A stretch of 64,000 bases of DNA, taken from assembly GCA_030704615.1 (NCBI GenBank), contig CM060731.1, positions 77,686,001-77,750,000 of the forward strand, in the 5' to 3' direction. Shown in pieces: positions 41,243-56,326 of the stretch; position 1 is the first letter of the stretch, and each line of letters begins with the position of its first letter. This DNA comes from Takakia lepidozioides. Lineage: Eukaryota; Plantae; Bryophyta. The notes below the pieces were generated by a model that was not told the DNA's origin, did not search any database, and saw only the letters and a program-made list of their open reading frames with translations. A program made the position numbers and the translations under genes.

Positions 41243-41666
41243 GCTGTGCTTCTTGAGTGACTTCTTGCAACCCCAGGCAGGTCTGTGGAGCTGGTCTGCC
41301 TGCCTGCCAAATTTGGGACTTGCTTTGCTGTTTTTGCAATTGCGTGTGAGCATTCGAGCATTCTGTGTTCTCGGGCGTGGGCTGGGGCAGTGGTGTTTCT
41401 CAAATTTGGAGCTCTCCGCGTGTCTTGGGGCATTCTGGGTGTCTATGGAGAGTAGGAACAGTGTTGCCAAATTTTGAAGCTTTTCTTGTTTTGGCGTTTT
41501 GCTTGTGAGATCTCGTCTGCAGACATTGCTCCTGCGAGAGAAATTTAGAGAGTATCCTGCGGTTGTTGCAATTGCGTTTGCTGAGCTTGTTGTCACGGCC
41601 GCTCTCCCTACGGACGCATTTTGGGTGTACTCACCAGCCGTTACGCTGGATCTCTCACTCTTTGGG

Positions 41667-42114
41667 ATGGACTCCAACATGTCCCCGGATGACGGGAACC
41701 ATGGAAGTGACTCGGAGATGCCAGCGGAATCCGTCAAGATGGAGGGCGATAAAGACGACGACGTGATTTCCCAGAGACTCGGGGGCATGGTGGCCAGCAC
41801 AGATGGCAAGAAGAAGAAGGGCAAGCGAGGAGGCAGACCTAAAGCTGATGTGTGGGAGCTGTTCAGCACCTACGGCGAGCGCAACGAGCGCACCCGCAGA
41901 TTCTTGGTAACCTGCAATGCTTGCGCTGCCATCATCGACGGCAGAGTGGACGGCATGGAGCGCCATGTTGGCTACGACTGCCAGAGACTGAACGAAGATG
42001 AGAAATCCAAATGGCAAGAGAAAGTGGTAGAGAAAGTGAGGAATGTGAAGGTGGAGGGCGGAGGTCTGCCCAGCACCAAAGGCCCTCCCAAGCGCGTGAA
42101 GAAGATGAAGAGGG
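41667..42114 (+). CDS. BED zinc-finger exon with basic NLS-like clusters (probable first exon of the aminoacylase gene)
   Basis: GGRPKADVWELF...VTCNAC...MERHVGYDC (W-x2-F, CxxC, H-x4-C). KKKKGKR and KRVKKMKR clusters. Phase-1 donor G|GTGAGG at 42114/42115. Confidence 0.75.
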
Positions 42115-44106
42115 GTGAGGCCTTCTTCCCACAACACAGCAGTTTGTTGGCAGCGGCTATGGCTTTTCAAGCTTTCGCCAGCTTTTGCCCCGCACCTTGT
42201 TTTCGCCAGCTGCCTGGTTTCGCCACCATGATCCGACCTCGCCATGGCGATGGCAGCCAACCTTTGTGCCAGAGGCTGTCTGTTTGTCTGTCTGTCTCTC
42301 TGTCTGCCTTTCTTCCTCCGCACTGGTTTTCTTTGTGATATTTTGGGGAGGTGGGTTAGAGGACAGAAGTTGTTATCTGTCAAACCCACCTTCGTTTTCT
42401 ATCTCAATGTCTGACAGATTCTTGCCTGCTCGTACTGCACGAAAAAAAGGGGCTTGTGATGGGGCCTGCTTCACTATAATGGTGGGTTGTTCAGTATGTA
42501 GAGTGGTGGGATATGAGATTGGGTTTTACTCTTGTTTTCTGCTCCTCCATCTCGGTGGCGGTGATGGCGTCTTCCACACGTCGCTTTCGGCCCCGCCAGC
42601 TCTGTCTCCTCCCGTCACTCTCAGGCCGCACTAGTCTGTTTTATAGCCGTCTGCTTCCTCGAACATTATTGCGGCCTTTTGTGTGCTTGTGAAACACGAT
42701 TGGTTGTGTGGATCTGAGGAACTTTGGCAGCATTTCTGTCCCGTATTTGAACCTCCATACTTCGGAGGTTGTCTCCGATCAGTGACAGTCGGCATTGTCT
42801 ACACTTTGGGTGTTCTGGTAGCTCTGTCTGTCTTGTAATGCCAAGAGAGATTGCTAGCTGCCGTGAACACCCATCTATGTCTAAGTTGCAACCGAGAAAC
42901 GGGCTACGAGATCACGGATTCGTTGGCCATAGCACAATGCCATATGGTATAGACCAAAGGATGTTCTTCAGTGAGTACGAGCTGATTTCATCATCAAATG
43001 GGAAGAGACTCAGTAAGAACGACTAGCACACCACCCTACTCGTACCCAACTCTTACATTGTTCTGCCGTTGTGGACAAACAATTGATCGCTTTGAGTGTA
43101 GTGATGATTACTATCTGGATAGTTTCTGGCATGGAGGTATGGAGATCCATTGCATCTTAAGCTGTTCAATGTGGCAATCAGATGCAAGGTGTCGAGTTGT
43201 TTCACTCGGGATGGGCCAAAGGGTTCTGCTGAGTGATGGTCTCTAGATGTTGCTGTTCAAGGATCTGTAACTCTAGTTATTTCTCCTTAAGCAGCTCTGC
43301 AGCTTTCACACTCTCGCATAGTAAATGGAATGTGGCGCAGTGATGGAAGCCACTGTAATCACTTGTTGGCAGTAGAAATTTCGGATCATTCTCAATAGGA
43401 AAGTGACCTAACAGGCATTAGCAAGCTCGATGGATTAGCACACTGGGACTAAAATCTGTAACCAGAAATGTTAGACTAGCAAGCTTACATTGGTGATGTT
43501 GGGTGTCACACTATGCCAATGGCGGATAGATAATAGGTCATGTGGAGTGGCAACATGTGCACCATGTACTGTGGCTATGAGCTGTTGAGTTCAGTGTCAG
43601 ATCCAAGAAGTAGAAGACAAGTTTGCGCCGATTGTTTAAATTTTGTTTCTGCATCATCCAGGCTGGCTCCATGTGGTTGGCGAAGCAGACTGTAGCCACA
43701 ATTTTGAGATAGGTTGTAACTATCTGTTTTGATCTGTTATCCACAACCGAGATTCTTATTTTCTTATTCTTTTTTTTAACAAAAAGCTTTTTGAAAAGCC
43801 CTCGGCTGTTCTCCAGGCGCCATTGCAGGGTGATTCTCTGCAACCTGTTTACCCAAGAGCTGATCTGTCCTTATTTGTCTCACATTCAGAGTACATCTCC
43901 ACCAACCAGTGGATCCTTTCTTCTTGTAGATTGCTTGCTCGTTGCCATGGACCTGGTTTTCTGATTAAATGCCTGTGTTGCAATGGTTATCATTTTTGCA
44001 TCACATGTTGGCACTACTGTTGATTGTAGAAGATATGAGCGCGTCCTCAGACTGATATTAACTCATTCTCCTTGTCTGCTACTGCTGTTTCTTTGTATGT
44101 TCACAG

Positions 44107-47100
44107 GGGTTACAAGTGATGAAGATGCTGTTGAGCGCTTCCGTGAATATTTGCGTATTCCTACAGTGCACCCTGACCCAGATTATAGTCCAGCTGTGCG
44201 ATTCCTACTCACACAAGCCTATTCAATTGGCCTTGATGCTCAGACAATTGAGTTTGTGAAGAAGAAGCCTGTTGTGCTGATTTCATGGAAGGGGGAACAT
44301 CCCTTCCTGCAGTCGGTACTACTCAACTCCCACATGGACGTTGTACCGGTGGAGAAAGACAAGTGGAAATATGACCCATTTGTTGCATACATGGACGACA
44401 ATGGCGACATTTTTTCAAGAGGCGCCCAGGTATCTATCCTTGTTAAGAGATGTAGATAATGCTGTTATGCGCAATTTCTCAATTCAGGGGGTGCCATTTA
44501 TTTCACAATGTACGGCTGACAGGTACAGTGTCAGACTGTCTGTCAAGACCTACTTGACACAATCTTTCCTAACTGGGAATCAACTCAAGTGTGTAATGAC
44601 CGCTCTCTTGGACCCCCTTTGTAAGATGAAATTGTCTGTAGCTTGTTTTGAACCCAAGTGTGGAAGTAGGTGGCATTGTAGAAGAGTGTCGAGCAAATTG
44701 GCACTGCCTCAACCAGTAAGACTTAAAATACTAGAAATGCCAAACGCATAATCAGAGTGTGTTGCTTTGCTATTGCACAGGTCTTGAGTTGACCTTTGAC
44801 AGCGAGAGAGCACTGGGGACCCGTATTAAAAGCTTCTGCCCGGAATTACTGAGTTGCATCATAGTGGATTCATCTGGACTTTCATGCACCTTACTTATCA
44901 AAACCCTGGCAAGGAAATTTGTGCAGCTGTTGATTGCAAACTAAACCTGTTTAGAGGAGCACATGACCGTACTCAGTATGTAGTAATTGCTCTGTCATGT
45001 AGGTGTATGCCATGCTTTTTGGTCATTGCAGAAAGCTTAAGGGGAACAGAAATTTTGTTGGTGTTTTTTCTTGTCAAGAAGGTGTCGTCATTGAGCACGA
45101 AAGTAATTCATCGTCAAAGGCATTTGTCCTCAGGCCCTTGCCTTAATCCTCTTAGTAGGGGAGGGAAGTTAAGATGGAGGTCCTTTTCTATCTCCTACCA
45201 GTGATTGAGAGTGACATATTGACTTGTTCCATTCCTACATGGGCAAGCAGGACATGAAGTCTGTGGGCATGCAATACCTAGAGGCAATTCGGAACCTGCG
45301 AGAGCAAGGATTCTCACCACTCCGAAGTGTACATGTCACATTTGTTCCCGACGAAGAGATTGGTGGGGGTGACGGATTTGCAAGATTCATTACTTCACCT
45401 GAATTCCAGGGTTTGAATGTTGGGGTTGCACTAGACAAGGGAGAGCCATGTCAGGAAGGGCACTACCGTGTCTTCAATGGAGAGAGGGCACCCTGGTGGC
45501 TAGTGATCAAAGCAGTAGGGGTGCCTGGCCATGGCTCTAAGCTGTTTGACAATAGTGCAGTGGAGAATCTTGAGAAGAGTATTGAAACAATATCACGGTT
45601 TCGGACAGCACAGTTTGATTTGATCAAGGCTGGAATGAAGGCGGAAGGAGAGATTGTGTCTGTCAATCCAGTATTTCTTAAAGCTGGCTTGCCAACTCCT
45701 ACTGTAGGTTCTGTTTCTTCAATGTAGCAATGTGATCCAGAGGTTATGGTGGTTCCAATTGGAAGCTATATGGAAGAAATTTGAACTGTCATGTTTGCCT
45801 CTCTTGGTCTTAAATGAATTTGCACCCACTGCAGAAATTCATCAACCTCTCAATTGCATGTCAGTCAATCTATGAGCTTATCTATGGTCTGCATTTGTCA
45901 GTAAGATTCCCAAGTCACATTTGTATGATGAGGGAGGCTTTGCTTGAAGAAAGGGTGACAAGTGAATGCAGTAACAAATGATATCTTCATCAACATAGTC
46001 AACCTTTGTGATAGTTCTGTAGACCTACATGTCATAAGCAGCTGATATTGATTTACTCACTGTTTACTCACATGGTGTTGCAATGGTGATTCAGGGCTTT
46101 GTAATGAACATGCAACCTTCAGAGGCTGAAGCTGGCTTTGATATTCGGGTACCCCCTTTTGCTGACCCACTTTCCCTTGAGAGACGAATTGCTGAGGAAT
46201 GGGCACCTGCTTCTCGCAACCTGTCTTACAAGGTTAGTGACATTGCCCTTGACGCTTGAAAGCGCTCTGTGAACATCCTAATGCTTGTTCAATCTTTGTT
46301 GTTCATTGTCTTGTCCTGGTTTTTTGGAGATCTTCAATTGGGATAAGCTAACAATCCATTAGATCCCAGGAGTATTTGTGGCTGGCACCTTGAGAGCGAC
46401 GGATTACACGGTGCTTCCTTTCTGCAGTCCCTCTACTTCCATGTCATTGATAAGTCTCGAGTGTTTGCATGTGACAGGTTTTAGTACTGAAAAATAGGCA
46501 AAGTGGGAAGGGGTAATTTTGTGTTTGGGAAGCATGAATGTTCTGAGTCTTCTTCCTCTTGGGATTGTGAGCGGGGCAGTATGAGCAAAAAGTGTATGGA
46601 CAAACAGCAGTTACACTGGTGGATTCATCCAACCCTTGGTGGGGCCTGTTTGAAGAGGCAGTGGCTAAGGCAGATGGCAAGCTTGGCCCACCAGAAATAT
46701 TTCCAGCAGCTACGGATGCACGCTTTATCCGAGCGTCAGGATTACCAGCATTCGGGTTTTCACCCATGGCAACCACACCCATCTTATTGCACGACCATAA
46801 CGAGGTGGGTCACTGTCTGATTGTGTTTTGTACATGCACAATTGACATGAGGGTGTTGTTGATGACAATATAACTGAACAGAGGAGTTTTCGCTGTGCTC
46901 TATTTACTGCATAGAGAGATTTTTGTTAGGTTTTTTTGAAATGTAGTGGTACTAGTGATAGTCAATCTGAAGTTCTCATGAATTTTTTCTTTTGAACCTC
47001 AAACAGATGACTTGGTCGCTAGGTTATGATGGTCACAGAGAGCGTTGTGAGGGGTTCAAATTATCTTGGGGCCTGAATCTGAGGCTACATTTCAGTGGGG

Positions 47101-47864
47101 ACATCCAGAGACTGGACAACTCCTCCAGTCTTTGCAAGTCGTCTTCACAAAGTGCAGCAAGCAATGCATCTAGGAGGCCCTCAGTTATGATAGATTCAAT
47201 CAGCTGCATCTCTCTTGACTCTTGGAGTGGTGCAATTCGGGCTACCTTTTAACATCCTGGCAGATTTTTCTGTTTTTCTCCGGAAAATTGGCAAAAACCT
47301 CAGTATGAAGATGTGGATAAATCGCATGCCCATGAATGTTGCGCATATGTGATCTACTCCTACTGTTGGAAGCCGATGAAATTGGTGGGGAGTGGTGGCA
47401 GCTTGTCACTGTTAGACATGATGAAGTTGATGGTTTCAGTCTTCATGATTAACAACACAATGTTAAGACTGCACTCTCCATGTAGCATTAGTTGAGGTAT
47501 CAACTTTGACTGGTGCAATTTGGTTAAACTTTAATGTCTGTATGGAGTTGTTACTCTTCACTTCCATAGAGATCTTCTCAACTCTTGTAGCGCTGAAGAT
47601 GAATGTGACTCAGGTTGAATACAGTCATGTGTCTTAGGTTGATTGTTGTAAGGTCCAGGAAGGCCAGGCTAACGTTGTAAGACTGGATGTCTGAAGTTGT
47701 TGCATGCCATTAGATGTGGGATCTGGGAGCACTTAATTAACATTAGACATTGTATTTGTCAGTTTATCAATGCGCAGGAGTTTCTTAAGGGCATCACAGT
47801 GTATGAGCACATCATCAAAGCCTTCTCAAGCTTTCCAGGTATTGAGGGTACGCTCTCCAATTGA
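44107..47864 (+). CDS. ACY1: Aminoacylase-1 (peptidase M20A); exons 44107-44429, 45251-45703, 46095-46232, 46580-46804, 47763-47864
   Basis: RFREYLRIPTVHP, LLNSHMDVVP, RGAQDMK, FVPDEEIGG, GHGSKL, IFPAATDARF, LLHDHNEF. Splice phases are consistent. The usual LDEG reads LDKG. Confidence 0.93.

Positions 47865-50432: not shown

Positions 50433-56326
<5,894 letters not shown>

Follow-up and report, generated by a model that had tools for sequence, protein, structure and literature searches.

A divergent BED-type zinc finger exon joined to an aminoacylase-1 gene in Takakia lepidozioides and related species

The window analyzed here is a 64,000-nucleotide stretch of the Takakia lepidozioides genome (GCA_030704615.1, contig CM060731.1, positions 77,686,001 to 77,750,000 of the forward strand). 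It contains, on the + strand, a six-exon gene in which an exon for a BED-type zinc finger is joined to the exons of an aminoacylase-1 (ACY1) gene. The coding part of exon 1 (41667..42114) runs from the ATG at 41667 through 149 codons and ends in phase 1, with an extra G at 42114. Intron 1 (42115..44106; 1992 nt; phase 1) has its donor GT at 42115-6 and a caCAG acceptor ending at 44106, with a pyrimidine tract upstream. The junction codon, G (42114) plus GG, encodes glycine, and the frame continues into VTSDEDAVERF at the start of exon 2 (44107..44429). This exon begins the ACY1 body and encodes His80 and Asp82 (NSHMDVV). Exon 3 (45251..45703) has Asp113 as its first codon, followed by Glu147/Glu148 (PDEEIGG), ALDKG replacing ALDEG, and His206 (PGHGS). 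Exon 4 (46095..46232) encodes part of the dimerization domain, with Asn263 and Arg276 retained, and exon 5 (46580..46804) carries His373 (LLHDHNE). Exon 6 with the stop codon (47763..47864) was placed from the sequence and from a loose contig end after 46804. The fused frame comprises 562 amino acids (149+1+107+151+46+75+33, with exon borders worked out by hand).

We compared positions 41500-47400 of the window with two public runs, X1 and X2, from two studies. The RNA nature of these runs was a guess; because their contigs skip introns at GT..AG borders, we take them to be cDNA. The X1 contig is 1940 nt long and the X2 contig 1461 nt, at depths of 45 and 12.5, respectively. Both contain the joints 42113/4 to 44106/7, 44426/9 to 45248/51 and 46230/2 to 46578/80. 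The X2 contig also has the piece 46095-46230 between joints 45703 to 46095 and 46230 to 46578; no X1 piece is listed for 46095-46230. Every joint in the contigs of the two runs is GT..AG, and a loose end past 46804 matches the first letters of exon 6 (47763). The contigs differ from the window at two positions (44144 and 44339), both synonymous third positions. Stray contigs from introns 2 and 4 had a depth of about 3.6. These data confirm that the BED-ACY1 fusion is real and expressed. The original prediction had claimed the phase-1 join of 42114 to 44107 and the 562-residue frame from the letters of the window, and had named transcripts across the join as a check; the spliced contigs of the two studies, which span it in both X1 and X2, bear this out.

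The fusion is also present in relatives. Searched with phmmer against 1.84 billion representatives, exon 1 had 33 hits, the two best of which (74% and 73% identity) are open reading frames (ORFs) that read through the exon 1 donor. In the locus L001 and in a second relative, species B (L002, L006, L008, L022 and L025), the BED exon precedes the ACY1 exons in the same orientation. Donor and acceptor are both of phase 1, as in the window, giving KKMKR-G-VTSDED in L001 and KIKRGE-G-ITSEDD in species B. In species C, the finger exon (L009) and the ACY1 gene (L010-L012) were found in one sample on separate short contigs, and this species probably carries the fusion as well. Judged from these sequences, the same exon order and phase-1 junction recur in three or four related species; absence from relatives would, according to the original prediction, have weakened the claim. 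Species B also provides an intron-less transcript contig (L028) with one 586-amino-acid fused ORF; 21 members of the protein collection represent this same ORF. The window exons were searched singly, and this contiguous ORF served as a natural full-length proxy for the 562-residue model. A metagenome scan with an exon-3 alignment recovered 80 ACY1 loci, and the finger exon was found in species-B loci only.

Both halves of the gene are under purifying selection, because the proportion of nonsynonymous differences (pN) is low (0.18-0.19 in exon 1, 0.06-0.17 in the ACY1 exons) compared to a saturated proportion of synonymous differences (pS; 0.42-0.78 between the three lineages, mostly 0.6-0.75). 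In a tree, the fused lineages (window, L001, species B and species C) form a clade with support of 98/95 inside plant-type ACY1. As to neighboring genes, an Aldedh gene lies downstream of the ACY1 gene of L001 and was absent from the window and from L006.

The ACY1 part of the fused gene lacks a start of its own. In canonical plant ACY1 genes, the exon equivalent to exon 2 supplies both a Met and a leader that is hydrophobic and signal-like, and canonical paralogues in the species-B assemblies likewise carry both. In the fused genes, the splice acceptor stands where the canonical leader would be. Because no Met precedes His80 in exon 2 and the usual signal peptide of plant ACY1 has been lost, the fusion is obligate. 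An alternative start at the ATG at 43983 had been raised in the original prediction, which described a signal-peptide-like leader there. There was no X1 or X2 contig over 43864-44060, and therefore an independent ACY1 start at 43983 is without support. We rejected this leader both as a relic and as an alternative start: it results from translating the pyrimidine tract, relatives do not share it, and no reads cover it. L001 has eight in-frame codons upstream of the acceptor and no Met among them.

Alongside the species-B fused gene, its metagenome assemblies contain three or four canonical paralogues of ACY1 (L024, L032/L033, L039, L042/L043 and L044), with intact catalytic residues and signal-peptide-like leaders. 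If these share a host with the fused gene, then the fused gene is a specialized extra copy.

Exon 1 encodes an acidic leader (residues 1-45), a GRP/basic cluster (47-59), the finger proper (56-106; 41832..41984, + strand), a helix (110-130) and the basic tail PKRVKKMKR (141-149). The borders of the finger come from the family alignment, an AlphaFold model and fold matches, and the leader (here residues 1-48) and the basic tail are predicted to be disordered. Both basic clusters (KKKKGKRGGRPK and PKRVKKMKR) resemble nuclear localization signals. In the family alignment (A1, 24 members), G56, W63, C83, C86, H100 and C105 are invariant. The zinc signature (CNAC...H-x4-C) is present as C83-x2-C86 and H100-x4-C105, as are the aromatics N-terminal of the first Cys pair, namely the invariant W63 and F66 in VWELF. 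Searches of Pfam and of PDB sequences with exon 1, both as a single sequence and as a family profile, gave nothing significant. In contrast to the window exon, which is under the Pfam zf-BED cut-off of 20.6 bits, five homologues are over it in the aligned region (P0007, 32.5 bits; P0023, 24.4; P0014, 23.4; P0013, 21.1; P0021, 20.8), and it is by this transitive homology that we assign the window finger to zf-BED. An AlphaFold model built from the family alignment has a predicted local distance difference test (pLDDT) score above 90 for residues 60-125, with a short helix, three strands, a helix and a long helix in that order. ZBED1, ZBED2 and ZBED3 are the three best Foldseek hits and account for three of the nine best VIA hits. 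From the sequence relationships and the model, we call exon 1 a divergent BED-type finger. The BED identity given in the original prediction thus stands as far as the invariant signature and the homologues that pass zf-BED are concerned, and does not extend to a Pfam zf-BED call on the window exon.

Several finger homologues run on into hAT-like sequence, and one Botryococcus protein has a DUF659 domain. No hAT RNase-H-like DDE core or hATC domain was found between or after the exons of the window gene, where the ORF runs straight into ACY1. Because the finger family includes hAT-transposase-like proteins, a domesticated transposase BED exon is a reasonable origin for exon 1, and the suggestion to this effect in the original prediction remains plausible on the sequence relationships. 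Among more distant finger homologues, P0005 and P0006 lie on contigs that end before any downstream splice partner. The nearest non-orthologous homologue is P0049, which comes from a public sequencing run (L003 3459-5509; 39% identity, E 6e-16) and in which a finger and a metallo-beta-lactamase-fold protein are encoded in one transcript-derived ORF of 454 amino acids. Weaker homologues have transthyretin/HIUase (P0032, from a chytrid), HSP20 (P0030) and the start of a beta-eliminating lyase (P0016) as partners.

The ACY1 body of the fused protein is complete. Exons 2 and 3 match PF01546 (exon 3 with 38.6 bits against a cut-off of 24.6), and the species-B ORF matches Pfam Peptidase_M20 with 93.6 bits over residues 245-574. 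Chains A and B of 1q7l also match, exons 2-6 align over their full length with canonical ACY1, and both the M20 catalytic domain and its inserted dimerization domain are present over the full length. The metal ligands of human ACY1 we take to be His80, Asp113, Glu148, Glu175 and His373, Glu175 presumably being a zinc ligand in ACY1 itself. Four of these five are kept in the window. At the Glu175 position, residue 320 of the fused model in the alignment to 1q7l, the window has a Lys codon (AAG, 45437..45439), so that ALDKG stands against ALDEG of human ACY1; the RNA-like contigs show no difference from the window at this codon. The general base Glu147 and the trans-acting residues His206, Asn263 and Arg276 are all kept. 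Homologous Asp and Glu ligands belong to the dinuclear site of M20 enzymes, including DapE, and the substitution H206A nearly inactivates ACY1 (PMC4012986).

We counted residues at these positions in 72 exon-3-like fragments. The Glu175 column, made up of the fragments and the window with four gaps, has 67 E, 1 D and 1 K, the K being that of the window; all 67 canonical loci have E. The Asp113 column has 57 D and 1 Y, and the His206 column 40 H and 1 L, both exceptions coming from species B. In that species D113Y, D174I, H206L and R276W were all seen in the transcript contig. L001 would have D113G, encoded in its genomic sequence by GGT after the only available acceptor. We also counted deviations at 60 columns whose conservation in the 67 canonical loci, all with intact active sites, is 97% or more. 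There was one in the window, one in L001 (plus Asp113), two in species C and five in species B (plus Asp113), compared to a median of 0 in the canonical loci. In these alignments, the fused clade alone shows replacements of active-site residues that are invariant elsewhere, and within it the metal site and the trans-acting catalytic residues are being eroded one lineage at a time. We regard this clade-limited loss as circumstantial support, at the level of sequence, for a non-catalytic role.

In species C, the variant ACY1 contig L012 (about 1136-1140) lacks 42 nt that are present in L011 (1051-1088), an in-frame loss of 14 residues, His206 among them. The contigs are otherwise 99.8% identical.

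The 5' leader of the transcript extends at least over 41523..41666 (+ strand), as the X1 contig reaches 41523, and there is no ATG anywhere in 41446-41666. Leaders of the fused genes are AUG-poor. At the start codon lies a near-invariant DNA block (GCTGGATCTCTCACTCTTTGGGATGGA, about 26 nt; 41645..41672, + strand, from a four-species alignment), which also occurs at about 2505-2532 in L001, at about 10051-10078 in L006, and in L009. The block is nearly unchanged in the four species, while synonymous sites elsewhere are saturated. It contains a CTG (41646-8) seven codons ahead of the AUG, in a strong context (A at -3, G at +4), and from this CTG the in-frame reading ahead of the Met is LDLSLF, a motif of the LxLxL type resembling the ethylene-responsive element binding factor-associated amphiphilic repression (EAR) motif. 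Possible roles for the block are initiation at a near-cognate codon and control of translation.

Intron 1 contains an extra transcribed segment (42354..43012, + strand), with depths of 15-22 in X1 and 4-6 in X2. In both runs these values come to between a third and a half of the main mRNA's depth, compared to about 3.6 for other intronic contigs. In one run the segment is joined from 43012 to 43662 at GT..AG borders, the far piece being 43662-43691. It is without a convincing ORF. A blastn comparison of intron 1 and the upstream DNA with L001 and L006 found no conservation except for the start-codon block, and because intron 1 is not conserved in these two loci, the segment is not a conserved exon.

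We propose, with moderate confidence and by analogy with BZR1-BAM7/8, that the fused gene encodes a nuclear, BED-tethered and probably catalytically impaired aminoacylase-like regulator. The basic clusters would import the chimera into the nucleus, and the BED finger with its GRP/basic arm would contact DNA. The M20 dimerization domain would pair subunits, a role that falls to hATC in ordinary BED proteins; the M20 body is a natural homodimer. The M20 pocket perhaps binds N-acyl amino acids, possibly gating activity, and the chimera would act as a regulator rather than as a bulk enzyme, like BAM7 and BAM8. A bolder version of the proposal, which we think unlikely to hold in full, is a dimeric BED transcription factor with a pseudo-aminoacylase body that would bind N-acyl amino acids or amino acids, making DNA binding metabolite-gated, and in which the conserved CUG would add the EAR-like repression motif LDLSL to part of the pool. 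If it is true, the presence of the finger's nearest homologue on another metallo-hydrolase would make a BED finger with a hydrolase body a recurrent sensor design. The interpretation in the original prediction is, as a whole, partly supported; the coupling of N-acyl-amino-acid status to transcription by a nuclear ACY1 is, like nuclear location and DNA binding, an inference.

Several observations weigh against the proposed regulator. Pfam zf-BED (PF02892) gave no match to window exon 1 at E <= 1. The matches to ZBED1, ZBED2 and ZBED3 are weak (E 0.36-0.77, Z 3.4-4.0) and within the small-domain background, and the top one, ZBED3, was solved within a cytoplasmic protein lattice of the oocyte subcortical maternal complex (SCMC). 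BED domains also serve as protein-binding modules. As to catalysis, the window gene is changed at one of the 60 conserved columns, with Lys in place of Glu175 the enzyme might still be partly active or have a changed activity, and D113G of L001 was read from one genomic contig with an inferred acceptor. All catalytic residues and ligands are intact in species C, and because of this the ancestral fusion was probably an active, relocalized enzyme, as some members maybe still are. Lastly, a second transcript, which the proposal does not account for, comes from within intron 1.

An active enzyme is the alternative we take most seriously, as possible but on the unlikely side. Here the BED/basic exon would do no more than replace the secretory signal, hydrolysis, for example of N-acetyl-amino acids, would take place in the nucleus or on chromatin, and the substitutions would tune the enzyme without abolishing its activity. 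Species C retains every ligand and catalytic residue, the window retains His80, Asp113, Glu147/148, His206, Asn263, Arg276 and His373, and purifying selection is strong across the whole M20 body, all of which fit such an enzyme. Yet the residue changed in the window is E in 67 of the 69 residues of its column and in all canonical loci, and its homologue is an M20 zinc ligand; species B is without four or five such residues while its gene is still intact and expressed; and the same site has been struck independently in three lineages, which fits relaxed catalytic constraint. We consider it fairly improbable that the finger is a protein-protein or localization module and the chimera part of a non-transcriptional complex. 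The best fold matches, which include ZBED3 in its oocyte lattice, and a finger too divergent for Pfam would agree with this, but BED fingers that bind DNA typically have a GRP/basic stretch like the one directly ahead of this finger, and W/F positions like those conserved in it, and the finger's relatives form the N-terminus of hAT-transposase-like proteins.

The remaining alternatives concern the gene rather than the protein. A precedent for a locus with two products exists in maize BAM7/BAM2 (PMC10400034). A promoter in intron 1 could likewise give an ACY1-only protein and leave the BED form minor, and the contigs at 42354-43012 (to 43662 in one run), at a third to half of the main depth in both runs, could be read in this way. 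We find this very improbable: there is no contig at 43692-44106, the sole ATG in the 30 nt past 43662 enters exon 2 out of frame, exon 2 itself reaches His80 without a Met, relatives do not share the in-frame leader ahead of the acceptor (L001 having no Met there), and intron 1 is not conserved either. Hardly credible at all is an artefact, that is, read-through, a chimeric assembly of two neighboring genes or a retrocopy, in which case the cell would make no fused protein. The RNA nature of the runs is only guessed, and contigs cannot show the ends of molecules. Against an artefact, the joint is identical in two studies, its phase is conserved across species, species B provides an independent cDNA-like contig, exon 1 is under purifying selection and the ACY1 part lacks its own start codon. 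The low-depth intronic contigs favor pre-mRNA over a retrocopy.

To our knowledge, very few eukaryotic regulators consist of a whole metabolic enzyme that was joined to a DNA-binding domain and then lost catalysis. BAM7 and BAM8 are the textbook plant case of such an enzyme-DNA-binding-domain regulator. Like the window gene, they combine an N-terminal DNA-binding-type domain with a complete enzyme body (PMC9478962, PMC10400034). As is proposed for the fused ACY1, selection maintains an enzyme body with little or no catalysis, and a nuclear form, which is predicted in our case, replaces an organelle or secretory targeting signal. They differ in their parts, a BZR1 atypical basic helix-loop-helix domain and GH14 compared to a BED zinc finger and an M20A metallopeptidase fold here. 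They also have a much wider taxonomic range and functional data, whereas the fused ACY1 is known here from sequence alone. We regard the likeness as an analogy of design only. With another finger and another enzyme fold, the locus would be a second, independent example beside BAM7 and BAM8. Its relatives appear to be at different stages, one with an intact site, the window with one ligand lost, and another with four to six key residues lost, and might offer a natural series for the study of how an enzyme becomes a pseudoenzyme or a sensor.

Each half of the fused gene can also be compared with its own family. Canonical plant ACY1 (M20A) aligns with exons 2-6 over their full length, and the tree places the fused clade inside it; unlike the fused gene, it has its own Met and leader and keeps Glu175, which is Lys in the window, and relatives of the window gene have lost more residues. 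The Atlas look-alikes of the fused protein are plain ACY1 (the streptophyte ACY1 cluster). Domesticated hAT BED proteins (DAYSLEEPER/SLEEPER and animal ZBEDs) and BED-containing nucleotide-binding leucine-rich repeat proteins (PMC3499209, PMC9296551) share with exon 1 the N-terminal aromatic, CxxC and HxxxxC. They are also like exon 1 in their homology to hAT-like fingers and reuse in a host gene. The fused gene differs from them in lacking a hAT core, DUF659 and hATC, and in having a metabolic enzyme as partner. P0049 in L003 resembles exon 1 in its leader, GGRP, finger, helix and basic stretch ahead of a metallo-hydrolase body. It differs in its partner enzyme, in a junction that lies inside one exon, and in Pfam matches under the cut-offs.

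The architecture of BED finger and ACY1 is apparently new, and its design is known from BZR1-BAM7/8. A survey of 750 plant Zf-BED genes described 22 architectures, with no M20 partner, and no Zf-BED in Physcomitrella (PMC9296551). In the literature that we searched, no paper pairs zf-BED with an aminoacylase, and no annotated NCBI or UniRef protein has this N-terminus at either of the length ranges searched. The only full-length fused proteins in the databases are species-B ORFs from metagenome and transcript assemblies. The supposition in the original prediction that the architecture was undescribed therefore holds for the protein databases and literature searched. Pfam-based surveys of plant BED proteins overlook a divergent BED subfamily, and gene callers that take the exons as separate ORFs obscure the BED-ACY1 architecture.

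An Rfam scan of the whole window gave no match. In all three species compared (window, L001 and L006), the finger exon has a much higher third-position GC content (0.72 in the window, 0.58 in relatives) than do ACY1 exons 2-5 (0.33-0.50). A 5'-3' gradient could account for this, as could a separate origin of the two parts. The window also contains beta-amylase exons (Glyco_hydro_14, E 2e-12 and 2e-14) at 52757-54700 on the + strand, some 5 kb downstream of the fused gene. Given the analogy with BAM7/8, their position near the fused gene is a coincidence.

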